Positions 1 to 43,765 of a stretch of DNA of 43,765 bases are shown piece after piece (positions within the stretch are counted from its first letter, which is position 1; each line of letters begins with the position of its first letter). The position numbers and the translations under genes were made by a program. The stretch lies in sequence record ON286972.1; one strand, 5' to 3'. A model generated the notes under the pieces. That model was not told the DNA's origin and searched no databases. It saw only the letters and a list, made by a program, of their open reading frames with translations.

Positions 1-124
1 CAAAACTGATGGCACAAAGGTACGTAATAAGTACAAAGTTATAATTGATGGTATTAACTATCAGGGTTATGACCTGGTAGATGCAATAAATGAACATACT
101 AGTAAGAGTAGAGGTTATTGAAAA

Positions 125-448
125 ATGTATGCTATAATTATCACTGTAATTTGTTGTGCTACTATAATCATCTGCCGTTGTATTGAAAAGAATGCACACA
201 TTCGTGGTATGGAAATTGAAAAAGACCTATATACTGAAAACATAGCAGAAAAGAAACCACAATCTCCATATAAACTTCAGAGAGATATGCATAATGAGTC
301 AAAAACATGGGGTTATTGCATTACTCAAAACGGTAGTCGTCTAACATCAAGTTCTGGACATTATCAAATCATCCATAACATTGATGAAGCAAAAGAACTT
401 GTTTGGGAACTAGAGGATCTTGGTGGCTATGAAAGAACGAAATTTTGA
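125..448 (+). CDS. hypothetical protein, N-terminal membrane anchor
   Basis: ORF in packed + strand run; hydrophobic N-terminus. Confidence 0.7.
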   Translation: MYAIIITVICCATIIICRCIEKNAHIRGMEIEKDLYTENIAEKKPQSPYKLQRDMHNESKTWGYCITQNGSRLTSSSGHYQIIHNIDEAKELVWELEDLGGYERTKF

Positions 449-632
449 AATTTACAAAACAATTCAGGAATTAAACGTAAAGCATGATATAATGCTAGAT
501 GTAGACAATAAGATTGCTTACATGAAAAAAGAAACTGTTTCAATGCTTCAGAGATTTTCACAAAAAGCATTTTTAATGAAGTTCTGTGCAGATGAGCATC
601 TCACGGGACGAAAACTCTATAACGAGGCATAA
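429..632 (+). CDS. hypothetical protein
   Basis: ORF; ATG 429 preferred, overlaps previous gene. Confidence 0.65.
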   Translation: MKERNFEIYKTIQELNVKHDIMLDVDNKIAYMKKETVSMLQRFSQKAFLMKFCADEHLTGRKLYNEA

Positions 633-633
633 T

Positions 634-975
634 ATGGATTTAAGCTCAACAATTAATTTTTTGAGTGATAATTACGAAAAGGTCATATCAAGGGGTGGTA
701 TTATTATCCACCCTGTAACAAATGAAATGTTCATGGTTCGCTTTGATGCAAATTCATATGACCAAGTACTTGTAATATCACAATTTATCGATTATAATGA
801 AGTTGTTCAATTTTGCTGTACTGAATTCGGAATCTATCTTAAAGATGCGGAAACTAATGAGATTGGTCATTACTTATATCAAACTCTGATGGTTACTCTA
901 GATTTTGGACTTACTTTCGAAAATCTGGTACAATGTCACTATATGTTTAAAAACTTTCCCGCGTCTGGGAATTAA
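634..975 (+). CDS. hypothetical protein
   Basis: GAGG RBS before ATG 634. Confidence 0.7.
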   Translation: MDLSSTINFLSDNYEKVISRGGIIIHPVTNEMFMVRFDANSYDQVLVISQFIDYNEVVQFCCTEFGIYLKDAETNEIGHYLYQTLMVTLDFGLTFENLVQCHYMFKNFPASGN

Positions 976-985
976 TGGAGTTCAA

Positions 986-1828
986 ATGTCAAACATTATC
1001 GTATTCAAAACTGTATCATTCAATAAAGATCTTTATTCTCATTCTTATGTGTCTTCCAATAATCTCATCATTGAGTTGACAAATGGGGCAACGTTGGCGG
1101 TAGAATTCGATTCTAGTATTGAATCTAACGCTGCACTAAAAGAACTAGCAATGGTATTAAATGGTGAACCAGTAAACAAATCCAAACCAACTGATGGGTT
1201 GGATATGTTGGTCAATAAGATCCTAAATGGCAAATCTTCTGAAATTGTTGAACTTCTTAAAAATTGTACTGATAAAATCACTGAAACTGTTAGTACTGCA
1301 AAATCTAAGGCTGAAGATAAGCTTTATGAAGAAGCATTTAAAGTCGTGGGGGCCGCAGCAGAATCTAAGTTAAATGGTATGATTAATAATCTTGACCAAG
1401 TGCTGTCTCATATGTTCACAAAAGAATATGAAACTGAAGAACCTGAATCCCAAGAACAACCTTCCAAAAAAGAAGATGTAAAATCTAAAGTGAAATCCGC
1501 ATTTACTGGTGCTAAAAAGAAATTTGGTCTATCTGAAGATATCTTTGGATATTCTGATACCACAGCACAAACCGATGATGATTCACAGTCAGATGATATT
1601 CTGATTGGTGATATGCTTGATCGCCAGTTGCGTGCTGAAATTTCAGCATTCGTTGACAGTGTTGTTAGTTCTGAACGTGCACAAGATATGTTCGAAAGTA
1701 TCAGTAAGAATTTTGGTGAAGAAGAATCGAAAGCTGCTATTGATGGATTTAAAAATCTAATTTATTCCGTTGCAGTGCAGCACCAAGATAAAACATTAGA
1801 ATATGTGATTCGCAATTACTTTATGTAA
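986..1828 (+). CDS. acidic hypothetical protein
   Basis: GGAG RBS before ATG 986; long ORF. Confidence 0.8.
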   Translation: MSNIIVFKTVSFNKDLYSHSYVSSNNLIIELTNGATLAVEFDSSIESNAALKELAMVLNGEPVNKSKPTDGLDMLVNKILNGKSSEIVELLKNCTDKITETVSTAKSKAEDKLYEEAFKVVGAAAESKLNGMINNLDQVLSHMFTKEYETEEPESQEQPSKKEDVKSKVKSAFTGAKKKFGLSEDIFGYSDTTAQTDDDSQSDDILIGDMLDRQLRAEISAFVDSVVSSERAQDMFESISKNFGEEESKAAIDGFKNLIYSVAVQHQDKTLEYVIRNYFM

Positions 1829-1836
1829 TGAGAACG

Positions 1837-1864
1837 AAAAAGCCTCCATATGGAGGCTTTTTTT
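1837..1864. terminator. bidirectional intrinsic terminator
   Basis: AAAAAGCCTCCA-TA-TGGAGGCTTTTT between convergent genes. Confidence 0.9.
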
Positions 1865-3020: not shown

Positions 3021-3055
3021 AAAACAAACCCCTCATTGTTGAAATGCTTATAAAA

Positions 3056-3063
3056 TATTTATG
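3056..3063 (-). promoter_or_regulatory. T4-late-type promoter (CATAAATA)
   Basis: one mismatch to TATAAATA, upstream of 3020 gene. Confidence 0.45.
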
Positions 3064-3085
3064 ATAAGGAGGGTGAAAATCGGCC

Positions 3086-3962: not shown

Positions 3963-4288
3963 TGATGTTCAAGAACTTCATTGCTATAGTAGCAGTACTA
4001 TTCTTAACTACGTGCTTCATCAATCCAGTTTATGCTGATAAAGTGCGATGGAAGGATGTTAAATCACCATCCTATTGTGCTGGTTATGCTAAGGTAAAGG
4101 ATGAACAACACAATAAGCAGTACTATAAGGATATGTTTTCATTTTACAATTCTATGATTTCAGAAACTGACTTGATGGCAAAGAGAGTTGATCGTGAAGA
4201 TTTCCTTCAAGGCTATGACATGAATGATGATGAAAAAACATTAGAATGCGTAGAAGTTTTTAATTACATACGAGGGTTTGATGAATGA
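3962..4288 (+). CDS. secreted/periplasmic hypothetical protein
   Basis: signal-peptide-like N-terminus ending VYA. Confidence 0.7.
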   Translation: MMFKNFIAIVAVLFLTTCFINPVYADKVRWKDVKSPSYCAGYAKVKDEQHNKQYYKDMFSFYNSMISETDLMAKRVDREDFLQGYDMNDDEKTLECVEVFNYIRGFDE

Positions 4289-4749
4289 CAGCACTGATAT
4301 GTATTAGTCTATTTGTTATTGTATATCAATTGATTTTTTCTATCATTGATGATGTTGAACATATTGCATATAGTAAATCTATATCTAAGTTTGAGGGCAA
4401 TCTTGCTTTTTTTAAATCATTATTTTGGACATATTTGTTACCAAAAGAATTTTTAGTTGTGTCTTCATATTATTCATCATATAATCTAAACTATAGTATT
4501 AGTGATTTAGCAAACATTGAACTGGTTTGTCGAAATGCTATCAACAATGTTAATGGATACAAAGTTGTGATGAAAAATCCAGGGGTGATCCATTTTATAG
4601 AACCAGGTAACAGCAGTTCTGAACTAAAACTTAGTGATATGTATCTTTCATATAACTCAATGGAAAGATTCGTTTTACCACCGTACTATATTCGTTTGAT
4701 CCTAAAAGCACTACAAAATAAAACTACAGATGTTCTTGACAGGCTATAG
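4285..4749 (+). CDS. hypothetical protein, N-terminal TM
   Basis: ORF with ATGA coupling. Confidence 0.7.
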   Translation: MTALICISLFVIVYQLIFSIIDDVEHIAYSKSISKFEGNLAFFKSLFWTYLLPKEFLVVSSYYSSYNLNYSISDLANIELVCRNAINNVNGYKVVMKNPGVIHFIEPGNSSSELKLSDMYLSYNSMERFVLPPYYIRLILKALQNKTTDVLDRL

Positions 4750-4764
4750 GTGAAGTGATAAGAT
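4736..4764 (+). promoter_or_regulatory. sigma70 promoter
   Basis: TTGACA-17-TAAGAT with TGn extension. Confidence 0.65.
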
Positions 4765-4813
4765 AGTACCAATGAAACACAACACTAATTTATAATCTAA
4801 TGAGGAACCAACC

Positions 4814-5272
4814 ATGACAGTATTAGCTACCCAATTTAAACGAAATACAGAGCAACGTGAAGGTTACTTGAGTATCAGTGAAGTGGTTGAAGGAAACTTC
4901 AAACAGTACATTTTCAATGCTTCTATTAAATTAAAAGCGACAAAATCTGATAAAGATCGTGGCTTTACTAAGTGGGTGGCTTACTGGGAAGATTCACCTG
5001 TTGCAATTGAAATGACAGTAATGACAACAGTACTGGAAACTGGATACATTAAAGCGACCATTGTAGATAAACAAGTACGAACCATTGATGAGATTGGTCC
5101 TTACCCAGCACGAAATTCTAAAGTATTTGGTAACTTGATTGATGGTAAGTTTATGTTGGATAAAGATGCACAAGTTTATGTGATGGATAAGGTAGAAAAA
5201 GCGGCAGCTAAAAAAGAAGTTGTAAATCAAAGTCAAATTGACTTAATCAAACAAGCATGGGGTTTAAAATGA
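4814..5272 (+). CDS. hypothetical protein
   Basis: GAGGA RBS, 152 aa. Confidence 0.8.
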   Translation: MTVLATQFKRNTEQREGYLSISEVVEGNFKQYIFNASIKLKATKSDKDRGFTKWVAYWEDSPVAIEMTVMTTVLETGYIKATIVDKQVRTIDEIGPYPARNSKVFGNLIDGKFMLDKDAQVYVMDKVEKAAAKKEVVNQSQIDLIKQAWGLK

Positions 5273-5712
5273 TTTCTATCAAATCCGTAAAATACATTTA
5301 TCTTCTTGGTATTTTGTCTTGGTTTGCATTACCAGTACTGGACTTCTTTCAAGTCACAGATGATAACAAGTACCAAACAGTAGTTTCAGTGTTTTCACTT
5401 TTATTTTTTCTTGGTGTCTTTTTTTCTAGTGCTTTTATGATCTTTAGTGATGAAGACGATGCAAGACGTTTCTATGCAGTAGTTTTTGAATTTAAACACT
5501 ATGGGTGGTATCTAACACTCCCGTTCATTCCATGTATCATTTATGCTTTCAACTATGAATACTATTCATATATGGGCATGGCAATGATTTTGTTTATTAT
5601 CCTTGAACGTATGCGAACGGTTCAAAACAAGTTTGCACAGGAGTACGAAGACATGCAAACTGCGGAAGAGATACGTAGGAAGTCAATTCCAACAACAAAG
5701 GTAGATTTATAA
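5269..5712 (+). CDS. multi-pass membrane protein
   Basis: four hydrophobic segments; ATGA-type coupling. Confidence 0.75.
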   Translation: MISIKSVKYIYLLGILSWFALPVLDFFQVTDDNKYQTVVSVFSLLFFLGVFFSSAFMIFSDEDDARRFYAVVFEFKHYGWYLTLPFIPCIIYAFNYEYYSYMGMAMILFIILERMRTVQNKFAQEYEDMQTAEEIRRKSIPTTKVDL

Positions 5713-6137
5713 TGAGAACATACTATAAACTATTACTCGCTCCCTTTTCATTTGGTATTTTATGTCTAATCGACGTATTATGCACAAAGTATTCGATTAG
5801 TACAGTACTTAATCCAGCTTGGTTTACTATTGCTATTGTTGGATACTGCCTGTGTGCGGGTATGGCTGCTCTTATTACGTTACTAACAATTGCAATGGAT
5901 AATGACGAGAAAGATAAAAACAGCTTTGCGAATGACTTTGGGTGGAAAACGATCAGTTCAGTAACTATTGTACCATTTGCATTACTGACAGTTTATTTCA
6001 TTCAAATGGGTGAGATCATTCCTGGTGTTGCATCATCAATACTTTTGTTAATGACAATAGTTGTTCGTTCACGACAAAATTCAATAATCCAAGAGTTTCT
6101 TGAACGAGAGGCAAGGGAAGGAACAAAAACATCTTGA
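5712..6137 (+). CDS. multi-pass membrane protein
   Basis: four hydrophobic segments; same layout as the preceding gene. Confidence 0.75.
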   Translation: MRTYYKLLLAPFSFGILCLIDVLCTKYSISTVLNPAWFTIAIVGYCLCAGMAALITLLTIAMDNDEKDKNSFANDFGWKTISSVTIVPFALLTVYFIQMGEIIPGVASSILLLMTIVVRSRQNSIIQEFLEREAREGTKTS

Positions 6138-6162
6138 CATAAAATGTGTTAAGGGATATAAT
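6134..6162 (+). promoter_or_regulatory. sigma70 promoter
   Basis: TTGACA-17-TATAAT; -35 contains the upstream TGA stop. Confidence 0.85.
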
Positions 6163-6191: not shown

Positions 6192-6443
6192 ATGAATCTC
6201 GAGGTGGTGAAATCATTAACTGAAGCTTTACAGAAAAATGAAGTCCAATGTCAAGAACTACGTGACACTATTAAGGTTGAATACGCACGACTCCAAGGTA
6301 TGCTTCAAGAATCAGAATGGGTAGTTACTAAAAGCATCGAAGGTATCTACAAAGATATCGAATCAATGTTCAATAAGAAAAGTAAGATTGAATCAGATTC
6401 TTTTAACAAACGTAAAGAACTAAATGCAGTTTTAGGTATCTAA
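6192..6443 (+). CDS. coiled-coil hypothetical protein
   Basis: AGGAGG RBS; heptad-like pattern. Confidence 0.75.
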   Translation: MNLEVVKSLTEALQKNEVQCQELRDTIKVEYARLQGMLQESEWVVTKSIEGIYKDIESMFNKKSKIESDSFNKRKELNAVLGI

Positions 6444-6447
6444 GTAC

Positions 6448-6485
6448 TTGACAGTACTGAAATATAGGAGTACAATGTACTCCTA
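6448..6485 (+). promoter_or_regulatory. sigma70 promoter with 10-bp inverted repeat over the -10 box
   Basis: TTGACA-17-TACAAT; TAGGAGTACA-A-TGTACTCCTA at 6465-6485. Confidence 0.8.
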
Positions 6486-7653: not shown

Positions 7654-7654
7654 A

Positions 7655-9179: not shown

Positions 9180-9680
9180 AATGGATGTTCATGATACAAT
9201 GATATTGTACAATTCTGTTGGCATGGATGACATGAACCTGATCCACTCGAAAATGTAGAGGGCAGTTGAGCAGTCCAGCAGTGCGAAGTGCAGAAGAAAC
9301 CCGTCAGATGTGGGCATATTATGAACCCCTCACGGCAATGCGGCACTATAAAGAACCACGTTAGGATGGCTGGTGGTTCCTCGATAGACATATAAGGATA
9401 ACACCTTACGAATTATCTAAGGGAGAGTTATCAAATTTTGTACAGGAAAGTTGCGTCCAAAATTTGAGTACTCACATTAAGTATTTGATTGCATAGATAC
9501 TTAATGAAGATACACTATGTTTAAAAGTGTAGACCGTCATATGAAACTGAAGTAGAGAGAAACAGGATGACCCGCTTTCGTACTCATTAAGAGTAATCTT
9601 CAATGCAATAGCTCTGATACCATCAGCGTCAAATTCCCCTCCCAGCGGGGGGAAGAAAAATCCCTTCCTCAAATCCCGTC
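9180..9680. ncRNA. candidate structured noncoding RNA or hairpin-rich cis element
   Basis: no credible ORF, higher GC than flanks, at least 7 stem-loops; TGnTACAAT at 9192-9200. Confidence 0.35.
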
Positions 9681-11049: not shown

Positions 11050-11077
11050 TTGACATAAGATATCAGTACTGTATAAT
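11050..11077 (+). promoter_or_regulatory. sigma70 promoter
   Basis: TTGACA-16-TATAAT, AGTACT in spacer. Confidence 0.8.
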
Positions 11078-14948: not shown

Positions 14949-15190
14949 TGTTAATTTTATACGTTGTACTGATTTTATTAGTTAACTTTTCTCCAACTAT
15001 TTTAACTTTAGTATGGGGTAAATTTTATGATGCTGTAAAAGTATTTCTCTTGAATACTGCATGGGTATTGGTAAGTCTGACTCTTTATTGGTCTACTGAT
15101 TGGATGATGATTGTGAGTCATATACTACTATATATTTCATTCCTAATGTTGTTCCAAGAAAAAGAAGTACTTGACAAACTTGAAGGTTAG
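14948..15190 (+). CDS. membrane protein
   Basis: TAATG coupling; hydrophobic. Confidence 0.7.
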   Translation: MLILYVVLILLVNFSPTILTLVWGKFYDAVKVFLLNTAWVLVSLTLYWSTDWMMIVSHILLYISFLMLFQEKEVLDKLEG

Positions 15191-15199
15191 ACCTATAAT
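15171..15199 (+). promoter_or_regulatory. sigma70 promoter
   Basis: TTGACA-17-TATAAT preceded by AGTACT. Confidence 0.85.
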
Positions 15200-22639: not shown

Positions 22640-22667
22640 TTGACAAACTCAACTAGTACTGTATAAT
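22640..22667 (+). promoter_or_regulatory. sigma70 promoter
   Basis: TTGACA-16-TATAAT with AGTACT in spacer; short leader hairpin GGGATGA/TCATCCC downstream. Confidence 0.8.
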
Positions 22668-24214: not shown

Positions 24215-24652
24215 ATGACACGCATTAACTTAGTACATGTTAAAGAACTTGCTGACCAACATCTGATGGCTGAATATCGTGAACTTCCACGTGTGTTTGG
24301 TGCTGTACAAAAACATGTTCAAGCACGTAAGCGTGTACGTGATTTCAAAATTAACAGTACTTATCTGTTAGGTTCAGGTCATGTAACATTCTTCTACGAC
24401 AAGTTACTATACTTACAGAAGCGTCATATTGATATTGTTAACGAATGTTTGCGTCGTGGTATGAAGATTCAAAACACTGAAGTAAACGACATTAGCGGCT
24501 TCCCTGCTGAGTTTTGTAATGACTACGTACCATCGGAGTCCGAGATTAAAACATCACGCGAGCGTTTGATTGAGAAGCTTCAGATGAAGCCTAAGTGGTA
24601 TAAGTTTACTGATGTTGAGCTACCTATATATTATGTTGATATGATACAATGA
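24215..24652 (+). CDS. denV: pyrimidine dimer DNA glycosylase / endonuclease V
   Basis: [35 protein letters not shown] closely follows T4 DenV. Confidence 0.97.
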
Positions 24653-27706: not shown

Positions 27707-27925
27707 TTGATAACACATAACATCGATAAGGTCATGTTATTATATGCATGTATTAACATGATTGTCGTTTTAGTTAAAGTTTATGGATGGTTTCATACAC
27801 TTGATATTGATACTGAAAAGGAGTATAATCCTCAAGAAGCATCTCTTGGATTAAAAATTATTGTTTTAATTAGCGTAGTATCCGTATACATGGTATTACT
27901 ATCAACTATGATTAAGTTCACTTAA
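27707..27925 (+). CDS. small membrane protein
   Basis: TTG start adjacent to stop; two TMs. Confidence 0.55.
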   Translation: MITHNIDKVMLLYACINMIVVLVKVYGWFHTLDIDTEKEYNPQEASLGLKIIVLISVVSVYMVLLSTMIKFT

Positions 27926-33983: not shown

Positions 33984-34140
33984 TCAATTAAATGGGGAAT
34001 CTTTAACAAATGAATTCATGATGTACTTGATGAATTGCCCATACCAACGGATTCCTCAGTCCCAGCATACCACATGGTATTATCGAACTTTTTATCATTG
34101 TAGTATCATAACCACACCAAACATCATCAACATTAGTATT
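33984..34140 (-). pseudogene. decayed relic of a propeller-array gene
   Basis: NTNVDDVWCGYDTTMI / KFDNTMWYAG (1-nt shift) / SFVKDSPFN* resemble blade 1 and C-terminus of neighbours. Confidence 0.7.
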
Positions 34141-35491
34141 ACAACAATTGTATTTCTGTGAGTGTTTGATATGTTGTACCGTTGTACACACCTCTCCAAT
34201 ATACCCTACCTTCAGTACTAACCACTAATAATCCATATGTTGTAAACCCAAGAGTACCACCAACATACATAGCATCTTTAATTCGAATACCAATGTCTTC
34301 ATATGTAAATGAAGCGACTGCTCCCGCTTGCCACGAAGGACTAGCGTAGTAATCACTATAAACACCATGTGCTTTATATATTGATGTTGTTCCTGGTTCA
34401 AAAATTACAGTTCCACAGTAGTTCATTCGTATTTTAGTACTGGATGAAGTCGGTACATTTATACCTATGCCATCTTTTATCCCTGTAGTTAGGACGTTAA
34501 AACCACCCGCCACACGGTTGACGTCATTCTCACCGATTAAAAACATACCAACGTTGTAGCCCATATAATATACACTGCTACTGCCATTCCAGAAAGAAAA
34601 ACCACCACCATTACCACAGCGATATAGTTGTGAATTTGAGCAGTACATCATACCTTCGTTTGTCGCATCAAATTCATCTGCTGTTCCTATTGTAGCTACA
34701 GTAGTCCACGTTTTAATCACTTGGTTTGTACTAGCTGGTGTTTGTATACCATATCGTATATTATATCCCTTACCAACGATTGTACCATCTTCTAATTTAG
34801 CATAAAGTACAGGTCTATTACCAACAAAATACATATTATTGTGTGACATGTCTATTGTGCATCTTAATGAAACTACTTTTTGTGTCAATTGATTATCTTT
34901 AGTAAAAGAAGTAAAGTAGTAATCCGATGTTGAGTTGTTTATTAAACCTTGTATTGACAATCCCATATACCAGATTTCACCATTGCTGTTTAATGCTGCC
35001 AAAATACAACTATATTTTGAAGTGTATGCTGGTGATGTTGTTGAAGTTGCTGGTCCTTTATCATATCCACCACAGAATACCATCTCCACAACTTCACCTA
35101 CGTTCGAAAAATAAGAAGATACATTGATAAAACCATTTGTTATAAAAGGTGCTGTATTCATACTTGAATGTGTGAATATCCCATTTGCATATACACCACA
35201 AAAATGATATGAACCATCATTATCTTGGACTATTATTCCATTTGATAGTAACCAAAAATTGTTTACATTTTTTCTTACTAATTCAACTCCTGCACCATTG
35301 GTTGGTGTTATACCAAAAGAAACATATTTTGTTTGACCAATACCATATAAATTTCCATTAGTTGCTAGTATTGCACCAAACCAGTTCCCACCACCATTCC
35401 TATCATGACCCATACCAATGGAGTCAAATTTCTTCACAGTAGGGACTTCAACTTTATTCCCATACTCTAGCATTCTAACAAAAGGTAACAT
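34139..35491 (-). CDS. MLPFVRM-leader RCC1-like beta-propeller protein (450 aa)
   Basis: true start at MLPF with AAGGAGG RBS; LYGIG, IWYMG, VYWRG blades. Confidence 0.85.
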   Translation of the reverse strand: MLPFVRMLEYGNKVEVPTVKKFDSIGMGHDRNGGGNWFGAILATNGNLYGIGQTKYVSFGITPTNGAGVELVRKNVNNFWLLSNGIIVQDNDGSYHFCGVYANGIFTHSSMNTAPFITNGFINVSSYFSNVGEVVEMVFCGGYDKGPATSTTSPAYTSKYSCILAALNSNGEIWYMGLSIQGLINNSTSDYYFTSFTKDNQLTQKVVSLRCTIDMSHNNMYFVGNRPVLYAKLEDGTIVGKGYNIRYGIQTPASTNQVIKTWTTVATIGTADEFDATNEGMMYCSNSQLYRCGNGGGFSFWNGSSSVYYMGYNVGMFLIGENDVNRVAGGFNVLTTGIKDGIGINVPTSSSTKIRMNYCGTVIFEPGTTSIYKAHGVYSDYYASPSWQAGAVASFTYEDIGIRIKDAMYVGGTLGFTTYGLLVVSTEGRVYWRGVYNGTTYQTLTEIQLL

Positions 35492-35555
35492 ATATCCTCC
35501 TTTATTCATTATATTATATTTAATCAAAAAAGAAAAGCCAGTACAGAGTACTGGC
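35460..35555 (-). repeat. array junction repeat 1 (hairpin, T-tract, TAAATA, RBS, leader codons)
   Basis: GCCAGTAC-TCT-GTACTGGC TTTTCTTTTTTGATTAAATATAATATAATGAATAAAGGAGG..ATGTTACCTTTTGTTAGAATG. Confidence 0.95.
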
Positions 35556-35566
35556 ATTTAAAATAA

Positions 35567-36742
35567 TCAAAATGTAGGAAGTTTGAATTCTCTCATAACA
35601 GATGAACTGCTTGCAGATACATTATCTGGTGATTTCCCTGCGTAGTATAATTTATTATCAATGAACATATACAATGTTGCATCATTTCCTGCTACAAGTG
35701 ATTCACTTTTCTTAAATTTAACACCACTAGGTAAAATTGCTTCAACAAATGAACCTGATTCTCTTGTAGTATTATTTGCCAATTGACCATTGTTATTATA
35801 ACCAGTACTATAAATTTTACCTGAACTATAATATACGAGTCCACGAGTACTAGTGTTTTCTATTCGAATGAATTCACTATCATCTGGGACTGTAGTTGAT
35901 AGAACTGGGTTTAACTTATAAGCAGATGATACATTATTATTACCCAATTGACCATAACCTTGAAAGCCTAGTGTATACATAGGACATGATTCTGGTGTGC
36001 CTTTTGTTATAATACCAATATAATTCACACTACAAAAAATGTCTATTGCTTCTGTAATAGGTGTACCCTTATATTGAACCCAAGGGAATACATACGATTG
36101 TTGCTTACCATTTCCCAAAGTACCGGAAGTTGTTGTCCCAGTACGCCACATTGTATCATCAAGTTTAATAATCCAGTTAGCTGTCGTTATCGATGAACAG
36201 AATTTTTTAACATTATCCACTAAAAATGTAAATTGATTATAATATGATGCAGTGTTTATACCAAACTTAGCACCAGTATTATCACCTAACAAATATAAAC
36301 TATTATCTGTACCTAAAATCAAAGCATAATCATAACCCACGTATATATCTTTAATTCTTGAAATTCCAAATTGTGTAAAATAGCTTGTACATTCTGTGAA
36401 TGTTGTTATATTATTGGTTGTATTATTACCTAGCCATTTATCTAAACCACTATAAAAGAATCTATCATCATTTGTGCGTATTAGACAAAAAGCGTTCATT
36501 GTACTGCACCAAAAATCTTTAACATTGCTATATATTTTTGTCCATTCAGTTACTGCATTAGTATGACCTAAACCAAAAATTCCACCATTCTGAAGACCAA
36601 TAGCCCATATTGAACCATTTTTATCAAGCATCATTGTACATGTATGTGAATAACCACCCGATGGTGTAACTAATTTAACAAAATTGGGAATATATGGTAA
36701 AACTTTATTTCCATAATCCAACATTCTAACAAAAGGTAACAT
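35567..36742 (-). CDS. MLPFVRM-leader RCC1-like beta-propeller protein (391 aa)
   Basis: IWAIGLQNGGIFGLG, YTLGFQGYGQLGN, YSTGYNNNGQLAN. Confidence 0.9.
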   Translation of the reverse strand: MLPFVRMLDYGNKVLPYIPNFVKLVTPSGGYSHTCTMMLDKNGSIWAIGLQNGGIFGLGHTNAVTEWTKIYSNVKDFWCSTMNAFCLIRTNDDRFFYSGLDKWLGNNTTNNITTFTECTSYFTQFGISRIKDIYVGYDYALILGTDNSLYLLGDNTGAKFGINTASYYNQFTFLVDNVKKFCSSITTANWIIKLDDTMWRTGTTTSGTLGNGKQQSYVFPWVQYKGTPITEAIDIFCSVNYIGIITKGTPESCPMYTLGFQGYGQLGNNNVSSAYKLNPVLSTTVPDDSEFIRIENTSTRGLVYYSSGKIYSTGYNNNGQLANNTTRESGSFVEAILPSGVKFKKSESLVAGNDATLYMFIDNKLYYAGKSPDNVSASSSSVMREFKLPTF

Positions 36743-36809
36743 AATTCCTCCTTTATTCATTATACTATATTTAATCAAAAAAGAAATGCCAGCATCAAGT
36801 ACTGGCATT
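36710..36809 (-). repeat. array junction repeat 2
   Basis: same unit, hairpin with one mismatch. Confidence 0.95.
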
Positions 36810-36813
36810 ATTG

Positions 36814-38004
36814 TTATAGTTGTCTTGGTGTATCAAGTACATATCTATTTGTACTAGGACCACCATCATCATACGTTCCGGTTGAATATATATTTTTCAT
36901 ATCAGCAGTTAGAAAAGTACGATACGAACCGCGATATATTTTTATTTTATCATACATAGAATATGATATTTCTGCTGGCATTGGACATATAGTAAATCTA
37001 CCAATAGTAACATTAGAACCAACACCCAACGAACCAGCATAACTACTCGCATTTAAACCAGTTGCATATACACCAGTACTCGTAACTAGTATACTAGATT
37101 GTGTTGGGTATCCTGTATGAATTGAATACAAAGTTCCAGTTGGTAATGTCGTACTATTGCTCCCTAATACAGCAAGTGCCGAACTGGTTGTGGTATTGTT
37201 ACCCCATGCACCATTACTCGCTAAACCACCAACTAGAAACTGACGTGCACCAGTACTTGGATTCTCAACCAAAGCACTGACTGCACCACTTGAGCATCCA
37301 GTGTATTGTAACGTTTTTGTGTATGTTGTACTTGGTTTATATAAAGTATATTCATTAAATGGTGTCCATGTGGTACTGGTACTTATACCTGACGTACCAC
37401 CACCAATATATAAATTATTTTGTGTATCAAAAAACATTACACAGTTATTTGTTGACTGTATTTGTGCAATATCAACATTAGGCGTGACAGCTTTTACAAA
37501 TGATCCATCTGTTATTTGTTGAGTACTACCAGTACCATCAGCGAATTGTCTAGCCCCACTCCAACCAGTACTCCATATTGTATTATTATCCATTAATACC
37601 GTAAACCACGTAGTACCTCCATACATCTGTTTAATTGAAGTACTTGAACTTTGCGTGTACAAATTTTCAATATATTGGTTATAACTTAAAAACGTAGTAG
37701 TACTAGTTGGTAAACCAATATGATCACCATATCCACAATAAAAATAATTTGAGTCATTATCTTGTACTAACAAAGTTCCTTGTGACACCCAGAAATCTTT
37801 AACATTTTCTCTAATTAAGGTCCATGACTTTACTGCATTACTATTTCCTATACCAAACTTCCCAAAACTATTATTTCCACGTGCGTATAGTTGACCATCC
37901 GTATAAAGAACGACAACATCTAAATCAGTTGGTGTTATTTTCTTAATTTGAATAGGGACTGGTGTTATATTCCCATAATCAAACATTCTAACAAAAGGTA
38001 ACAT
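36814..38004 (-). CDS. MLPFVRM-leader RCC1-like beta-propeller protein (396 aa)
   Basis: LYARGNNSFGKFGIG, VYATGLN..GSLGVG. Confidence 0.9.
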   Translation of the reverse strand: MLPFVRMFDYGNITPVPIQIKKITPTDLDVVVLYTDGQLYARGNNSFGKFGIGNSNAVKSWTLIRENVKDFWVSQGTLLVQDNDSNYFYCGYGDHIGLPTSTTTFLSYNQYIENLYTQSSSTSIKQMYGGTTWFTVLMDNNTIWSTGWSGARQFADGTGSTQQITDGSFVKAVTPNVDIAQIQSTNNCVMFFDTQNNLYIGGGTSGISTSTTWTPFNEYTLYKPSTTYTKTLQYTGCSSGAVSALVENPSTGARQFLVGGLASNGAWGNNTTTSSALAVLGSNSTTLPTGTLYSIHTGYPTQSSILVTSTGVYATGLNASSYAGSLGVGSNVTIGRFTICPMPAEISYSMYDKIKIYRGSYRTFLTADMKNIYSTGTYDDGGPSTNRYVLDTPRQL

Positions 38005-38069
38005 ATTTCCCTCCTTTATTCATTATACTATATTTAATCAAAAAAGAAAAGCCAGTATCAAGTACTGGC
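37972..38069 (-). repeat. array junction repeat 3
   Basis: same unit; hairpin 38051-38069. Confidence 0.95.
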
Positions 38070-38075
38070 CTATAT

Positions 38076-39245
38076 TTAAACTGGTGAATCTAATACAAAT
38101 TCTAAACTACTAATGCCACCATATGTGACATTTGTCCCTGTGCTATATACAAAATTACCATCAGTTATATAAGTTCGGTTATACCCACCTGCCATCTGCG
38201 ACTTACTATAATCAAACCCATCAGGAACGATTGCTTTGGTATATACTAATGCATTATTAGATGTACCAATACCTAACATACCAGCTCCTGAAGATTTATT
38301 GTAGCCGCAACAATATATACCATCTGTTGTAGCAATAACTTGGTTATAATATGAAGTAATGTTAGCAATGCTTACTACATCACCGGGTGGCATTAGTGAA
38401 GCAGTTTGAACCTCAAATGCTCTATAATCACTGAGAGAACCATTTATCCCATCTGCTTGTGCACCAAATATTCTCGAACCGCCATTTGCGATGATGGTTT
38501 TACCAGTGGGATCAGTACCAATTGCCATTGCCATTGAAGTACTATTCTCCATATAGTACTTGATATTAATTGTATTTCTTAAGCTGGTAGGAGCACCATA
38601 ATATATAGTATATAACTTACCTCCTGAACTTGTAACTGCATTTACTCTTCCTGTATAAAATAGCCATCCTTGGTTTGTAACATAACCGTGCATTAAATTA
38701 CTTGCAAACAATTTAACAGGTAATTGATCTGCTGCGGTCGGAACAGTACTTTTGACGAATTTTCTAGCAACATTGTTAGTTGTTGTCCCATCACCCAACT
38801 GACCATCACCCCCTGCTCCAGTACTCCATATTGTTTGGTCTGTTAGTAATACACTTGTAGTCTGATAACTAACTGCTATATCTAATATTGGTAATGTTAA
38901 CGTATCGAATGTTGGCATAGCAGAAGTCCATATTGATACTGCTGCCCCTGGCATACCAACAGTTGTTGAACTTCCACTGTACCATATTTCATCATTGCTT
39001 TTCTTAATAACTATCGACGTGGCTCCCATCCAAAAATCTTGAACATCAGAAGTGCTAAAAGTCCATGTAGTAACAATATTTTTGTGACCTAAACCCAAAA
39101 GACCATTTGTATTCTCACCACGCACATATAAATCACCACTGTTTGTTAAAACAGCAACATTATAGTTGTTAGCTAGTATTTTTTTAATATTTGGTTTAGC
39201 AGGTGCAATATTCCCATACTCTAACATTCTTACAAAAGGTAACAT
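38076..39245 (-). CDS. MLPFVRM-leader RCC1-like beta-propeller protein (389 aa)
   Basis: LYVRGENTNGLLGLG, IWSTGAGGDGQLGDG. Confidence 0.9.
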   Translation of the reverse strand: MLPFVRMLEYGNIAPAKPNIKKILANNYNVAVLTNSGDLYVRGENTNGLLGLGHKNIVTTWTFSTSDVQDFWMGATSIVIKKSNDEIWYSGSSTTVGMPGAAVSIWTSAMPTFDTLTLPILDIAVSYQTTSVLLTDQTIWSTGAGGDGQLGDGTTTNNVARKFVKSTVPTAADQLPVKLFASNLMHGYVTNQGWLFYTGRVNAVTSSGGKLYTIYYGAPTSLRNTINIKYYMENSTSMAMAIGTDPTGKTIIANGGSRIFGAQADGINGSLSDYRAFEVQTASLMPPGDVVSIANITSYYNQVIATTDGIYCCGYNKSSGAGMLGIGTSNNALVYTKAIVPDGFDYSKSQMAGGYNRTYITDGNFVYSTGTNVTYGGISSLEFVLDSPV

Positions 39246-39309
39246 AATTCCTCCTTTATTCATTATATTATATTTAATCCAAATAAGAAAGCCAGTATCA
39301 AGTACTGGC
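39210..39309 (-). repeat. array junction repeat 4
   Basis: same unit; hairpin 39291-39309. Confidence 0.95.
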
Positions 39310-39315
39310 ATTGTG

Positions 39316-40425
39316 TTATTTCGGTAAATCAATTTTAGTAAAGACTGCAACATCCTCGCTTGCACCGGGAATGGCGTAATACGTTCCAGTACTATATACA
39401 TCTCCATTTTTGGTTAATATTGAAGTCAAACCATCACTAAAAAGAACATCCCTAATCTCACTAACTTCAACGGGTAATTGTAAATTTGTAGCACTATATA
39501 TAGCACCAGTTTGAGAATTGTTTAATCCCAAACCACGGTTCGCCCCAACACCCTTCTGATATGTACTGGTAATTACCATTTGTGTAGCAGTATTTAATGC
39601 AGGTGAATTCGTCATAAACAACGGAGAACTATTAGGCAAAGTACTTACAGGAACTGCACGGAATGTAGTCGTACCTGAACTAAGAAAGTTTGGAGTTTGA
39701 CCACATACGAAATATGATGTACCATTATAGTAATTAAATGCATTACCACCAATCGCTGCATCGATTACACCAGAACTACGTAATCCCCAAGTGTTAATTT
39801 GTGTTTGGTCCCCTGTACCATGCTGCCCACTGCTATTCCATCCAGAACTATATAGCTTATTATCTAATGTAATATACATACTATCATTTGCATTAGTCAT
39901 TACTTTACGCACGTTAGTAGCACATTGAGTTAATGTGTAAATCGATGATGAGCCAATACCTAAAGAACCACGATATCCATTATCTCCTGCACCATAGAGT
40001 ACTGAACTAGTGCTAAGTACAAATATTAAACCATTTGTACATACAATATTAGCAATTTCACTCACTGGTATAGCATTGGTAAACCAATTAGTCCTTTCAA
40101 CTAATATAGTACTGTAAGAAGTAGTTGTAGAAGATGAGAACCAGTACGTTTCACCCGATGTCCATATCGTATTATCATTTTTAATAATAACAAGTGTACG
40201 ACCACCCACGAAAAAATTAGAAACATCTGAACTTACTAATATCCATGAAGATACCGTGTTGTTATTACCATTTCCAGATTCACCACCTTGATTTCTACCT
40301 ATGTAATATAAATCATGTGAATCAGTCAATAAGAATTGACCCTGTGTAGAAGCACCAACTTTAATTATATTTTTAGGACCGGGTACAATATTCCCGTACA
40401 CTAACATTCTTCCAAAAGGTAACAT
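39316..40425 (-). CDS. MLPF-leader RCC1-like beta-propeller protein (369 aa)
   Basis: LYYIGRNQGGESGNG, LYSSGWNSSGQHGTG. Confidence 0.9.
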   Translation of the reverse strand: MLPFGRMLVYGNIVPGPKNIIKVGASTQGQFLLTDSHDLYYIGRNQGGESGNGNNNTVSSWILVSSDVSNFFVGGRTLVIIKNDNTIWTSGETYWFSSSTTTSYSTILVERTNWFTNAIPVSEIANIVCTNGLIFVLSTSSVLYGAGDNGYRGSLGIGSSSIYTLTQCATNVRKVMTNANDSMYITLDNKLYSSGWNSSGQHGTGDQTQINTWGLRSSGVIDAAIGGNAFNYYNGTSYFVCGQTPNFLSSGTTTFRAVPVSTLPNSSPLFMTNSPALNTATQMVITSTYQKGVGANRGLGLNNSQTGAIYSATNLQLPVEVSEIRDVLFSDGLTSILTKNGDVYSTGTYYAIPGASEDVAVFTKIDLPK

Positions 40426-40490
40426 AATTCCTCCTTTATTCATTATACTATATTTAATACAAAAAAGAAAAGCCAGTACTCTGTACTGGC
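40390..40490 (-). repeat. array junction repeat 5
   Basis: same unit; hairpin 40472-40490. Confidence 0.95.
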
Positions 40491-40498
40491 ATATTACA

Positions 40499-41641
40499 TT
40501 ATTTCCACGGTAGAAGTGAATCAGGAACTCTGGTTGGTACTCTAACGGCTGGAACATTTCCAAGTTCAGGTAAACCACTCATATACAAATTGTTATTTTC
40601 ATCAATTATCATTGAATAGAAATTATCAATTACGAAGCCTGAAATTCGTCTTCCTTCTAATGCATCAAGAACCATTTCGGTGAAAGTTAGTATATTTTCG
40701 GATGTTTGATTAACACCACATGCACCATAGGTATTTCGACCACAAGTATATAACTTATTATTATTTTTAACAACACATCCATTCCCTTCGTTGTTGGATA
40801 AACCACCCACCAACTCTATTTCACCTTGGAATGATAAATTGGGAATTAATGTACTCATTGGTACTGCTGATACTGTACCTACACCAGCTTGACCATATGC
40901 ATTTGGTGAAGCAACCTTCACTGAACCATCATTAAGAAATATATATGAAGTACGGTATGTATTTACAGCTTGTATAGCATTGGTGATAGTATTGTCTTTT
41001 GTAAAACTTAATATATTTGATGTTTTTGTACTACCAGGAGCAACAGTATTTCCTGCATACCAATAGGAGCCATCATCAAGTACTAACCCAGTACTGAGCA
41101 AAGAACAGCCATAACTTTTAACATTTTCTATAGTGCTGTATCTGAACGATGTGACATTAGCTGTTGACGCGTTACCAAATACACCACCTTCGCCAGAACC
41201 ACAGTAGAACCATTTTCCATTTTTTAAAAATACACGCAAATTCTGCCCAACAGCAATACCATCAATATCATCAGCACTGACACCAAAATCAGTGAAGTAC
41301 TGGGTTACATCAATCCAAACCCCATTTGTATTTGTTCCGATTTGTGGCATTACTATACTAGCACCTGTGAACCAAATAGTTCCATCATTCTTAATGGCAA
41401 TGGAACCAAGAACACCACCCCAGTAACGTTCAATATTATTATTCACACGGGTCCATACGGTGGATGATTGTAATGAACCATTACCACCTTGTCCAAATGA
41501 AGATGAACCATACCAGTACAAGTCACCATTAACATGCAAATAAAAACGAGTATTATAATTTGCTTGTAATCTATTTTTAAATAGAGGTTTTGGTTCCGGT
41601 GCAATATTCCCGTACTCTAACATTCTAACAAAAGGTAACAT
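40499..41641 (-). CDS. MLPFVRM-leader RCC1-like beta-propeller protein (380 aa)
   Basis: LYWYGSSSFGQGGNG, LYTCGRNTYGACGV. Confidence 0.9.
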   Translation of the reverse strand: MLPFVRMLEYGNIAPEPKPLFKNRLQANYNTRFYLHVNGDLYWYGSSSFGQGGNGSLQSSTVWTRVNNNIERYWGGVLGSIAIKNDGTIWFTGASIVMPQIGTNTNGVWIDVTQYFTDFGVSADDIDGIAVGQNLRVFLKNGKWFYCGSGEGGVFGNASTANVTSFRYSTIENVKSYGCSLLSTGLVLDDGSYWYAGNTVAPGSTKTSNILSFTKDNTITNAIQAVNTYRTSYIFLNDGSVKVASPNAYGQAGVGTVSAVPMSTLIPNLSFQGEIELVGGLSNNEGNGCVVKNNNKLYTCGRNTYGACGVNQTSENILTFTEMVLDALEGRRISGFVIDNFYSMIIDENNNLYMSGLPELGNVPAVRVPTRVPDSLLPWK

Positions 41642-41710
41642 AATTTCCTCCTTTATTCATTATACTATATTTAATACAAATAAGAAATGCCAGTACTCTG
41701 TACTGGCATT
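41600..41710 (-). repeat. array junction repeat 6
   Basis: same unit; 11-bp stem 41686-41710. Confidence 0.95.
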
Positions 41711-41713
41711 ATA

Positions 41714-42856
41714 TTATTTCCACGGTAGAAGTGAATCAGGAACCCTTGTCGGTACATTTGTAGTAGACACCCCATCAAGATTTGGTACACCGCATGTATA
41801 TAAATTATCAGCATCGTCAACTAACATCGTATAGTTATATCCCCTACAAAAACTACTAACATTACGACCTTCTAATGCAGTAAGAATCATTTCAGTGAAT
41901 GTTGTTATATTTGTCGAGGTTGAACCAACACCACATTGTCCATTTGAATTAAGACCACATAAAAATAACTTATTATCATTTTTAATTATACAGGATGGTC
42001 CAGTAAGGTTTGTACCAAGCTCACCCACTAACTCTATTTCACCTTGGAATGCTAAATTTGGAATTAATGTACTCATAGGGGCTGGTGTTGTATTCCCAGT
42101 ACCTGCTTGACCACGTTCGTTGGAAGATGCAACTTTAACTGTTCCATCACTAAGAAATATATAGGAAGTTTCAATTGTATTGACTGCTTTAATTGCAGTG
42201 CTGATAGAAGTTTCTTGTGTAAATCTTAGCACGTTTTGTGCTGACGTTCCCGATATAAACGTATTACCTGCATACCAATATGTACCATCATTGAGTACTA
42301 ATGCAGTACTTCGAATTGCACAACCAGCACTTCGAACATTTTCTATAGTACTGTACGTGAATTGTGAAACGCTTGCCGATGAACCATTTCCGAATACACC
42401 ACCACTCCCAGCACCACAGAAGAACCACTTTCCATTTTTCAAAAATACACGCATACACGCAGATATAACAATACTATCAATATCATCAGCACTGACACCG
42501 AAATCAGCAAAGTGCGATGTCACATCAACCCAAACACCGTTAGTGTTTGATGCAATTACTGGAATAACAGAACTTGTACCAGTGTACCAAATAGTACCAT
42601 CTTTCTTTATCGCTATTGTTCCTTGAACACCACCCCAATATCGTACAACATTTGTATTGACGAGAGTCCATGCGGTTGAAGAGTTCAATGAACCATTACC
42701 ACCTTGACCATATGATGAAGAACCAAACCAATATAGATTACCATTGGTGTGTAAATAAAATTTGGCATCTGCCGAGCATTGTAACCTATTTTTTAATCGT
42801 GGTGCGGGTTCCGGTGCAATATTCCCGTACTCTAACATTCTAACAAAAGGTAACAT
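41714..42856 (-). CDS. MLPFVRM-leader RCC1-like beta-propeller protein (380 aa), close paralog of 40499 gene
   Basis: same length, identical first 17 and last 12 residues. Confidence 0.9.
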   Translation of the reverse strand: MLPFVRMLEYGNIAPEPAPRLKNRLQCSADAKFYLHTNGNLYWFGSSSYGQGGNGSLNSSTAWTLVNTNVVRYWGGVQGTIAIKKDGTIWYTGTSSVIPVIASNTNGVWVDVTSHFADFGVSADDIDSIVISACMRVFLKNGKWFFCGAGSGGVFGNGSSASVSQFTYSTIENVRSAGCAIRSTALVLNDGTYWYAGNTFISGTSAQNVLRFTQETSISTAIKAVNTIETSYIFLSDGTVKVASSNERGQAGTGNTTPAPMSTLIPNLAFQGEIELVGELGTNLTGPSCIIKNDNKLFLCGLNSNGQCGVGSTSTNITTFTEMILTALEGRNVSSFCRGYNYTMLVDDADNLYTCGVPNLDGVSTTNVPTRVPDSLLPWK

Positions 42857-42868
42857 AATTCCTCCATA

Positions 42869-43765
42869 TTATTTAAAAACATACTGCGTATTAACACGAG
42901 TGCCATTGTCAAAACCAAGTACATAAAATATCTCAGCACTATTCTTAGAACCAAATAACGCACCAGTACTACTACTCAAAGTAGTATTAACCGCTAAGGG
43001 AATCCATATGTCTTCTTCTGCATCGTATCTCAATAAATTTAATGCACCATACGACACTGCATATATATTTTTATCATATGTACTGTAACATATTTTACTA
43101 GGGTTATTACCACCAACTGGTGCTATGTTAGACCACACCGCACTTTGTATATGATATTTTTGTGCAGTACTAGTACCTTGACCAGTAATATATATGTAAG
43201 TACCATCCGTACACATATCACCACCTCCATTGTTATTTGTTCCATCACTTGTACCTAATGATGACCATGTATTAGTACTTGGAGTATAACTGTATAACGA
43301 ATTATTAGTAGGCGAACCCCACAAATATATCTTATCCCCAGCAGTAATCATCTTACTATACGCCAGTTGACTAGGCTTCCCAATACTGTTAGTGTTCAGA
43401 ATCCATGTATTTGTACTTATATTATATACATAAAAATTATTACTACTATTACCTGAACCACCAAACAAATATATTTTTCCCTGATAAGCACATAACGCAC
43501 TACCAAATGTAGATACAGGTGCATTGGCTAATTGTGACCACGTTCTTGTAGTTAAATTAAAACTCCATAACTGATTATCCGTCTGCACCGCATTCTGTAT
43601 ACCACCAAATATATAAGCAATATTACTTTCCGCATCATACGTATAACCAAAGTTATTTCGTGCTGAAGGTACTGGTGATGTAGTAAATTGTGTTCGTACT
43701 CCACCATTTGGGCCAGGTAATGGACCTACATTCCCGAACTCAAACATTCTTACAAAAGGTAACAT
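42869..43765 (-). CDS. MLPFVRM-leader Kelch-repeat beta-propeller protein (298 aa)
   Basis: YIFGG, IYLFGG, LWSFNLTTRTWSQL, YVYNISTNTW Kelch motifs; ATG is the last codon of the window. Confidence 0.9.
   Translation of the reverse strand: MLPFVRMFEFGNVGPLPGPNGGVRTQFTTSPVPSARNNFGYTYDAESNIAYIFGGIQNAVQTDNQLWSFNLTTRTWSQLANAPVSTFGSALCAYQGKIYLFGGSGNSSNNFYVYNISTNTWILNTNSIGKPSQLAYSKMITAGDKIYLWGSPTNNSLYSYTPSTNTWSSLGTSDGTNNNGGGDMCTDGTYIYITGQGTSTAQKYHIQSAVWSNIAPVGGNNPSKICYSTYDKNIYAVSYGALNLLRYDAEEDIWIPLAVNTTLSSSTGALFGSKNSAEIFYVLGFDNGTRVNTQYVFK

Follow-up and report, generated by a model that had tools for sequence, protein, structure and literature searches.

The DNA stretch analysed here (the window) is the terminal 43,765 bp of the record ON286972.1 (355,528 bp, 100% identity) of Escherichia phage A4, a member of the genus Asteriusvirus whose host is E. 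coli LF82. The window carries 83 annotated coding sequences (CDSs), mostly small hypothetical early-type genes on the + strand. Two genes of the σ70 family and two DenV-like glycosylase fragments are also present, and on the minus strand seven tandem paralogs form a block with one kelch-repeat gene. The hexameric palindrome AGTACT, often extended to CAGTACTG, is dispersed over positions 1..43765 (no strand assigned) in 122 copies, of which 110 fall within CDSs, covering all three frames, and 12 lie in intergenic DNA or extend into it. The whole A4 genome and regions of relatives were compared with the window, and we find that AGTACT is a highly iterated palindrome of the type known as HIP1 in cyanobacteria, specific to the clade of Rak2-like jumbo phages.

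An earlier note, made from the letters of the window, had counted about 120 AGTACT sites by eye where roughly 15 were expected, and the exact count agrees, with 122 sites against 13.51±3.74 in 100 dinucleotide-preserving shuffles (maximum 24). Markov models of orders 0 to 4 give expectations of 14.9, 13.7, 25.9, 50.9, and 104 for the window. In the whole 355-kb genome, 922 copies are present where 120 are expected (7.7x), corresponding to a density of ~2.6 per kb, or about one copy per 385 bp. The octamer CAGTACTG reaches 224 copies against 3.7 expected (~60x; 24 against 0.45 in the window), and the longer forms TCAGTACTGA and TTCAGTACTGAA are found 55 and 23 times in the genome. The observed-to-expected ratio (O/E) in the window climbs with word length, from 2.5x for GTAC (~2.2x genome-wide) through 4.1x for AGTAC and 8.2x for AGTACT to 22x for CAGTACT, which indicates a motif of six to eight bases and not a GTAC bias. 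AGTACT is the top hexamer by z-score in both the window and the genome, followed in the window by GTACTG and CAGTAC. A bias of GTAC alone is further excluded by the other NGTACN words, which reach 0-2.4x against the 7.7x of AGTACT. The order-4 control nearly absorbs the window excess because most AGTAC pentamers (64% in the window) lie within AGTACT, so this control is largely circular; genome-wide, the order-4 expectation is still exceeded (922 against 770).

The palindrome is enriched as a unit. Words that keep only one of its outer bases (AGTACV or BGTACT) reach 1.3-2.4x in the genome against 7.7x for AGTACT, and arithmetic on the genome counts gives ~22x for CAGTAC followed by T against ~3.6x for CAGTAC followed by any other base. 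Such enrichment of the whole palindrome, with one-sided words only weakly enriched, fits symmetric recognition of the duplex. The frequent appearance as CAGTACT(G) described before is also found, C at -1 and G at +1 each occurring in 45-48% of sites, and the two flanks are independent of each other (224 double-flanked sites against 208 expected from the single-flank frequencies). The preference is present in non-coding DNA and in the two codon-permitting frames (46-47% C, 52-55% G), while in the third frame C at -1 stays at 46% and G at +1 goes down to 26%. The best flanks are C...G and TTC...GAA, and the most disfavoured is G at -1 (8-9% against a background of 19%), with GTG among the most depleted (0.2x). 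Flank information is ~0 beyond ±3 bases, which shows that no longer repeated element underlies the copies; a dispersed repeat resembling repetitive extragenic palindromes (REP) or miniature inverted-repeat transposable elements (MITE) was rejected, as no common extended flanks or terminal repeats were found. No Chi-like asymmetry or strand bias was seen in the genome, where CAGTAC and GTACTG occur 590 and 605 times.

Amino-acid and codon usage fail to explain the excess, as the earlier note had held. Copies in A4 genes are distributed over the three frames as 384/134/264, with another 134 in intergenic DNA, and the 110 window copies in CDSs as 60/18/32. Its examples of the three frames match the annotated CDSs, namely the frame-0 AGT ACT (Ser-Thr) at 1292..1297 (+) in A4_167 and, in A4_171, the copy beginning at codon position 3 in GCA GTA CTA at 3994..3999 (+) and that beginning at codon position 2 in CAG TAC TAT at 4119..4124 (+). 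In 500 synonymous-codon shuffles of the annotated window CDSs, 35.0±5.3 sites are expected (maximum 51) and 110 are observed; for the genome, the synonymous shuffle gives 228±13 and the codon-order shuffle 130, against 782 observed. These codon-aware nulls are surpassed 3.1-3.4-fold, and the excess thus withstands the codon-aware control that the earlier note had set as a refutation. Furthermore, AGT-ACT is the sole Ser-Thr codon pair in strong excess (3.6x; AGC pairs 0.9-1.45x, other AGT pairs and TCN pairs up to ~1.2x) and encodes 52% of the Ser-Thr dipeptides genome-wide against 15% expected, and the Val-Leu pairs GTA-CTG and GTA-CTA exceed expectation 6.7x and 2.0x. A codon or amino-acid bias is therefore ruled out by the two kinds of shuffles and the codon-pair tables. 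The word itself accounts for the odd codon-pair and dipeptide usage of these phage genomes (AGT-ACT, GTA-CTG), and its pressure has altered the protein sequences too, raising the dipeptide counts 1.3-1.5x (Ser-Thr 739 against 481 expected, Val-Leu 765 against 570, Gln-Tyr 292 against 196).

AGTACT fills 52% of the Ser-Thr contexts, 45% of the (xxA)-Val-Leu contexts, and 34% of the (Q/K/E)-Tyr-(Txx) contexts that permit it. The shift in log-odds from the codon-usage expectation, calculated from the shuffle, occupancy, and codon-pair data, is ~1.5-2.1 per frame, so that the pressure is weak, uniform, and of a magnitude usually associated with codon bias. The density is 4.3/kb in the non-coding and 2.4/kb in the coding DNA of the genome. 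In all, 780 sites lie wholly in genes and are evenly distributed along them, the last decile being the poorest, and this even spread rules out a positional promoter or ribosome-binding-site signal inside genes. Collectively, the excess acts on double-stranded DNA and not on protein. Six tRNA genes were found by ARAGORN at 304019-307088 of the A4 record (Ser-UGA, Gly-UCC, Ser-GCU, Met, Asn, and Thr-UGU), of which the Gly gene is missing from the annotation of the record. The Ser-GCU tRNA reads AGY codons, including the AGT that AGTACT forces into heavy use, and the Thr tRNA is UGU; this set is loosely consistent with compensation for the use of AGT and ACT.

The spacing of the window sites is close to Poisson (coefficient of variation 0.91), and no helical or other short-range periodicity was found up to 130 bp; a bump at 18-23 bp is caused by paired copies in promoters. 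Along the genome, the occupancy peaks where the record begins, in the early region of small genes, and is lowest in the late structural genes. Outside the window, a gene-free stretch of 2 kb at 4140-6138 of the A4 record holds ~25 AGTACT copies, many within the longer palindrome ATGATTCAGTACTGAATCAT, as well as ~20 tandem 8-bp units CTAGAYGG at 5196-5357, and it is a candidate origin or regulatory region.

All the window sites said before to lie at promoter boxes (6443, 6453, 11065, 15166, and 22655) overlap σ70-like matches to TTGACA-N16-17-TATAAT at 11-12 of 12 positions. In the promoter at 6443..6476 (+), AGTAC-TTGAC-AGTACTG is followed by N and TACAAT (TTGACA at 6448, 17-nt spacer, 11/12), and two AGTACT copies overlap both ends of the -35 box. 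Perfect promoters of the form TTGACA-N16-TATAAT lie at 11050..11077 (+) and 22640..22667 (+), where AGTACTG at 11065-11071 and 22655-22661, respectively, abuts the -10 box, and the AGTACT of the former is conserved in phage 121Q. In a further perfect promoter at 15166..15199 (+), AGTAC runs directly into the initial T of TTGACA (aaAAGTAC-TTGACA). The fixed registers make for a stronger association than had been claimed. Of the promoter-like sites of A4, 26 have AGTACTG directly against the -10 box (offsets -7 and -8), 13 have AGTAC joined to TTGACA (offset -5 relative to the -35 box), and 8 contain TTGAC-AGTACT. The same registers are found in Klebsiella phage RaK2, which belongs to a different genus, despite diverged spacer sequences; in its early region AGTACT is enriched 15x (186 copies in 37 kb), and of 48 promoter-like sites 22 (~46%) have a copy near the -10 box and 10 a copy near the -35 box. 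Paired copies bracket the -35 box, ~20 bp apart. Since the copies within promoter spacers precede the transcription start, a signal in RNA is excluded. Promoters and terminators together hold only ~5% of the 922 sites, the rest being spread evenly along genes. It is possible that the promoter copies serve as operators through which a factor shuts off early promoters, and also possible that these registers are the only ones in which AGTACT is compatible with the promoter elements under a uniform pressure, as the upstream copy fits the A-rich UP-proximal pattern and the T of TTGACA and the downstream copy gives TG beside the -10 box. The ~46% occupancy of the promoter slots equals that of the coding slots, which favours uniform pressure over operators.

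The hairpin arms at the junctions of the paralog array do carry AGTACT, as the earlier note had described. Six terminator-type stems GCCAGTAC...GTACTGGC with a T-run, each with AGTACT in one arm, lie between the seven tandem paralogous genes, the first downstream of an RCC1-like paralog at 35537..35555 and the others at 36788..36806, 38051..38069, 39291..39309, 40472..40490, and 41689..41707, all on the minus strand. The enrichment of CCAGTA and TACTGG is partly due to these arms. The paralogs themselves (34139-42856, minus strand) are annotated as 'putative DNA condensation protein' and are RCC1-like β-propeller repeat proteins, each with a near-identical upstream region and terminator, and a kelch-repeat protein at 42869-43765 adjoins the array. 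Their name appears to be an annotation artefact of 'regulator of chromosome condensation', and these β-propellers, which are no evidence for DNA binding, were rejected as readers of AGTACT. Elsewhere in the window, the product at 24215-24652, annotated as 'endonuclease V', has a pyrimidine-dimer glycosylase domain of the DenV type; a second one so annotated (27707-27925, 72 aa) matches no Pfam family and could be fragmentary or misannotated.

The excess is a property of a phage clade. In ~43 kb around the DNA polymerase gene, the O/E of AGTACT is 6.6 in A4, 5.3 in 121Q, 6.1 in RaK2, 4.6 in Salmonella phage Munch, 6.3 in Cronobacter phage GAP32, 8.9 in Xanthomonas phage XaC1, and 0.21 in Pseudomonas phage PA5oct. 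Among the IMG/VR contigs collected with a DNA-polymerase profile, all five with at least 73% polymerase identity have ratios of 5.1-6.6, and the ratios of ~50 contigs with 37-44% identity are 0-1.5. At -1, C is favoured and G avoided throughout the clade, to varying degrees. Confinement to the Rak2-like clade across host genera indicates that the excess arose in this clade and points to a phage-encoded cause. An excess of GGTACA in two distant contigs is no parallel, as it is a Gly-Thr codon effect present on one strand only. Within the searchable literature, the full-text search and the genome papers of CBB, fEgEco12, and RaK2 yielded no earlier account of an AGTACT excess in phages.

Conservation was analysed in ~65 kb, comprising a 53-kb region (49 codon alignments) and the window against 121Q (12 kb). 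A4 sites are kept in place in 51% of cases in 121Q and in 24-31% in other genera, against 30% and 12-15% for hexamers of the same composition. At identical amino acids AGTACT is kept in 58-78% of cases and the controls in 31-43%, so that at synonymous positions, where the earlier note had made the absence of conservation a refutation, the word is held above control hexamers. Between the window and 121Q, 16 of the 28 aligned sites are kept, against 27.7% of control hexamers. We consider this conservation suggestive of selection and not a proof of it. At the same time, turnover is fast. Over the 12 kb, 16 sites are shared, 12 aligned A4 sites are lost, 4 fall in gaps, and 22 are private to 121Q, and the totals of the two phages are similar despite this exchange; more than half of the A4 sites align to residues unable to encode AGTACT in the relative. 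Such a pattern is that of many individually dispensable sites kept at a set density. AGTACT is found within 15 bp of recombination or indel junctions in 21% of cases against 12.5%, a non-significant difference (p ~0.06).

The avoidance of 6-bp palindromes that phages usually display, the backdrop in the earlier note, is extreme in A4. GCGC is absent from the 355-kb genome (~340 expected), as it is from every Rak2-like relative sampled, and is present in all outgroups; 22 of the 64 palindromic hexamers, all with at least four G/C, are at zero, and five more have at most 4 copies. This loss is far beyond ordinary restriction avoidance and could reflect a clade-specific nuclease or a very broad evasion of restriction-modification. 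In a 50-kb sample of E. coli K-12 there are 3 AGTACT sites (0.06/kb, O/E 0.26), so the phage is ~40-fold denser, and the host has ~7 GCGC per kb. K-12 MG1655 is the listed host of phage Sharanji. The contrast in density makes AGTACT plausible as a mark of self, although it is no proof of one.

The proteins that might read the word were surveyed next to its distribution. A PADLOC scan of the 397 predicted A4 proteins, with a sensitivity limited to the PADLOC models, returned only methyltransferases, two in number, and no restriction-type nuclease; the lone Type IIG match is a UvsW helicase and not a restriction enzyme. One of the two, A4_406, is by sequence an N6-adenine methylase of the Dam family (PF05869) and the sole A4 protein with an NPPY motif, and it is conserved in the clade (at least 60% identity in ~50 records, 64% in Munch). 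The other, A4_120 (A4 record 292647-294545), is a C5 methylase (PF00145) interrupted by an intein with Hint and LAGLIDADG domains at roughly residues 80-420, its N-terminal extein resembling CpG methylases of the DNMT3 type. According to the RaK2 paper, DNA of that phage is CpG-methylated by bisulfite sequencing (data not shown there) and can be cut only by enzymes that are insensitive to methylation of the Dam, Dcm, CpG, and EcoKI kinds. DNA of fEgEco12 is cut as predicted by ten enzymes, none with GTAC in its site. A4_120 is thus probably a CpG methylase, and its action on AGTACT is unlikely, given the CpG methylation in RaK2 and the lack of a CpG in AGTACT; it was rejected as the reader.

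We consider the best explanation to be selection for recognition of AGTACT by a phage-encoded DNA reader whose effect depends on copy number, with a probability of roughly 45%. A weak and near-uniform pressure on double-stranded DNA would keep about one AGTACT per 385 bp, filling around half of the available slots in codon contexts, in the two promoter registers, in terminator stems, and in free non-coding DNA. The reader would be clade-specific, encoded by the phage, and symmetric (dimeric), with an effect that increases with the number of sites, and AGTACT, at ~40 times its density in the host, would mark phage DNA by density. We infer the existence of this trans-acting reader, its phage encoding, the additive benefit, and its action, and we favour a binding protein over a methyltransferase. 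The earlier note had proposed a genome-wide mark read by a DNA-binding, modification, packaging, or recombination system, for example for self/non-self discrimination; its genome-wide, DNA-level side stands, while the AGTACT-specific protein did not emerge. Indeed, several points weigh against selection for a reader. The survey by PADLOC and annotation yielded no methylase, nuclease, or binding protein specific for AGTACT, and the lack of periodic spacing gives no pointer to an architectural role. The conservation signal is modest and comes from the 53-kb region and the window, where the identity at 4-fold synonymous sites (0.49-0.58) is not fully saturated, and positional sharing may partly reflect shared ancestry or unequal favourability of contexts. 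In the major capsid gene, 0 of 3 possible AGTACT sites are filled, which suggests that the pressure gives way to other constraints and that no individual site is essential. In addition, uniform weak pressure, ~50% occupancy, and fast turnover are equally expected from a drive by biased repair or gene conversion.

A bolder form of the reader hypothesis, which we regard as doubtful, is that Rak2-like phages tell their own from host DNA by word content alone, with AGTACT as self and GCGC as non-self. In these jumbo phages, which have neither a nucleus-like shell nor bulk base substitution, a phage protein might read dense AGTACT (~2.6 against ~0.06/kb in E. coli) as self, and GCGC (none in the phage, ~7/kb in the host) might be non-self for a phage nuclease, or its loss might be an evasion of host nucleases. 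The AGTACT reader would then spare, organise, or preferentially express phage DNA, and it may turn off early promoters by way of the paired copies on either side of the -35 box.

One variant within the reader hypothesis takes AGTACT as the target of a phage methyltransferase, most plausibly A4_406, with (hemi)methylation regulating or marking the DNA, and this we hold to be unlikely. A4_406 is a conserved Dam-family enzyme with an NPPY motif, all-or-none recognition of a hexameric palindrome is typical of Type II enzymes, and early promoters, whose -35 and -10 regions overlap with sites, could be switched by methylation after replication; the reported resistance of RaK2 DNA to methylation-sensitive enzymes would also agree. 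However, the other methylase of the clade, represented by A4_120, is reported to produce m5CpG in RaK2, and CpG is a dinucleotide that AGTACT lacks; a partner nuclease was not found in the PADLOC scan of the 397 proteins. Methylation by itself also leaves the benefit of more sites unexplained. Moreover, characterised members of the A4_406 family are known to be GATC-specific or non-specific.

A neutral drive appears rather unlikely. Under this explanation, a clade-specific repair or recombination process, either resembling very-short-patch (VSP) repair or acting as biased gene conversion, converts near-cognate heteroduplexes to AGTACT in a setting of intense recombination-dependent replication, and the word accumulates with no function of its own. 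Besides the uniform weak pressure over all slot types with ~50% occupancy, such a drive would account for the very high turnover at a constant total, for the A4 sites that align to residues unable to encode the word in relatives, and for the peaks of density where constraint is lowest, that is, in non-coding DNA and small early genes. A4 also encodes the recombination functions EndoVII, gp46/47, and UvsX/Y/W. Nevertheless, words one mismatch away, transitions included, are not depleted (AGTATT 1.17, AATACT 0.91, AGCACT 1.98, GGTACT 2.16), which argues against a strong converting process and removes a VSP-like C-to-T repair signature from consideration. The enrichment (hexamer 7.7x, octamer 60x) far exceeds the known effect of VSP repair on CCWGG, and no Vsr-like protein was detected in a search limited to PADLOC and annotation. 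The sites are also kept about twice as often as controls, the same argument that Xu et al. used for HIP1.

We consider it quite improbable that AGTACT is the preferred site of a DNA-transaction enzyme, such as a type II topoisomerase, junction resolvase, nickase, or primase, whose high density would let the 355-kb genome be decatenated, resolved, primed, or nicked everywhere. The symmetric hexamer with its GTAC core would suit a two-fold symmetric cut with a 4-base stagger, and A4 encodes T4-type topoisomerase II subunits, EndoVII, a primase, and several proteins of the HNH and GIY-YIG types. One site per ~385 bp would suit a process needed every few hundred bases, a density for which a hexamer would have to be enriched. 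On the other hand, no requirement for a specific hexamer is known for primases, resolvases, and topoisomerases of the T4 type, and readers of single strands such as primases need no palindrome, although it is the palindrome that is enriched as a unit.

A host protein with an AGTACT-centred operator, titrated or activated by the phage genome and for example blocking division, is highly improbable. One candidate is the nucleoid-occlusion factor SlmA, whose consensus GTGAGTACTCAC has AGTACT as its core, and an additive, sponge-like effect would be compatible with density-type selection. A near-perfect site, TTGAGTACTCAC at window positions 9464-9475, matches this consensus at 11 of 12 positions and has its AGTACT core conserved in 121Q; it lies in a 650-bp non-coding gap after a σ-factor gene and is one of four GAGTACTC words in the genome. 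However, the 355 kb contain 0 perfect GTGAGTACTCAC sites and 2 of the form GT.AGTACT.AC, and the flanks exclude SlmA-binding sites, as G at -1 is the least used base in all lineages. The trait is, in addition, shared across host genera, a Xanthomonas phage included. Weakest of all, a by-product of duplicated early promoters and terminators or of codon, amino-acid, or GTAC composition can be all but dismissed, for although the fixed promoter registers (26 and 13 cases in A4, 22 and 10 of 48 in RaK2), the six paralogous terminators, and an order-4 expectation of 104 near the observed 122 speak for it, promoters and terminators hold ~5% of the sites against 780 spread evenly within genes, the flanks become random past ±3 bases, the observed count is 3.1-3.4-fold above codon-aware nulls with AGT-ACT at 3.6x and other Ser-Thr pairs at no more than 1.45x, and the order-4 control is circular.

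HIP1-like palindromes have stayed unexplained for decades, partly owing to slow cyanobacterial genetics, and the same phenomenon is now found in lytic coliphages that grow on laboratory E. coli, with a small proteome, a 40-fold contrast to the host, and dozens of sequenced relatives. If the reader exists, AGTACT would be a new kind of genome-wide mark of phage DNA that is independent of base modification, and it could explain how jumbo phages with no nucleus manage or protect 350 kb of DNA. If self-recognition by word content were true as well, it would be a sequence-density system in a virus. In any case, AGTACT together with the GCGC-free signature provides sharp compositional markers of the clade in metagenomes.

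Among known systems, restriction-site avoidance resembles AGTACT in that selection acts on palindromes of 4-6 bp as units, as in the loss of GCGC and 22 hexamers from A4, and differs in sign, AGTACT being the most over-represented hexamer in a genome that purges palindromes. Chi, over-represented for example in phage P1, is likewise a short word of additive effect under weak selection with many dispensable positions, and it marks DNA as 'own' for a nuclease-helicase, to which we liken AGTACT. In contrast to AGTACT, Chi is asymmetric, works in one orientation with a strand bias, and is read by the host RecBCD, so that it varies with the host group, whereas AGTACT does not change with the host genus. 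Of the E. coli Chi octamer GCTGGTGG itself, A4 has 21 copies on the + strand and 2 on the - strand (~1.3 expected per strand), and the related words CTGGTG and TGGTGG are top hexamers in distant relatives as well; this excess is probably a codon effect (Ala/Leu/Gly-Gly) and not functional Chi. The uptake sequences of Pasteurellaceae (uptake signal sequences, USS) and Neisseria (DNA uptake sequences, DUS) share with AGTACT a density of about one per kb, a location in genes and terminator stems, an influence on codon and peptide usage, and the character of a genome-wide bias in place of site-specific function. They differ as non-palindromic 9-12-mers that serve a competence machinery, while a lytic phage has no uptake step. 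The SlmA-binding sites (SBS), Noc-binding sites (NBS), and the parS sites of ParB are scattered palindromes for dimeric or spreading proteins that mark a replicon, SlmA even with an AGTACT core, but they number tens per genome and measure 12-16 bp, against ~900 copies of a 6-8-mer.

HIP1 (GCGATCGC), the precedent named in the earlier note, is the right analogue, being iterated, dispersed, and conserved above controls. Both words are hyper-abundant short palindromes with about one copy or more per gene, lineage-specific, and dispersed in coding DNA in several frames and in non-coding DNA. AGTACT shows each of these features, namely over-representation of a short perfect palindrome, dispersal through several frames and non-coding DNA, and retention above controls; it is an analogue and not HIP1 proper, as the word is not GCGATCGC and the lineage is not cyanobacterial. 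The AGTACT sequence is different and AT-rich, its carrier is a virus clade and not a cellular lineage, and it is over-represented 8x as a hexamer and 60x as an octamer, where HIP1 reaches 15-300x. A periodicity of 10-90 kb is described for HIP1, while AGTACT was checked up to 130 bp, with none found, and AGTACT, unlike HIP1, takes fixed registers in early promoters. The HIP1 core is linked to CGATCG/GATC methylases, and no methylase matching the AGTACT core was found. Xu, Lawrence and Durand (2018) found HIP1 conserved above control words and took this as evidence for selection, and the turnover of AGTACT at constant density matches the pattern that they describe.

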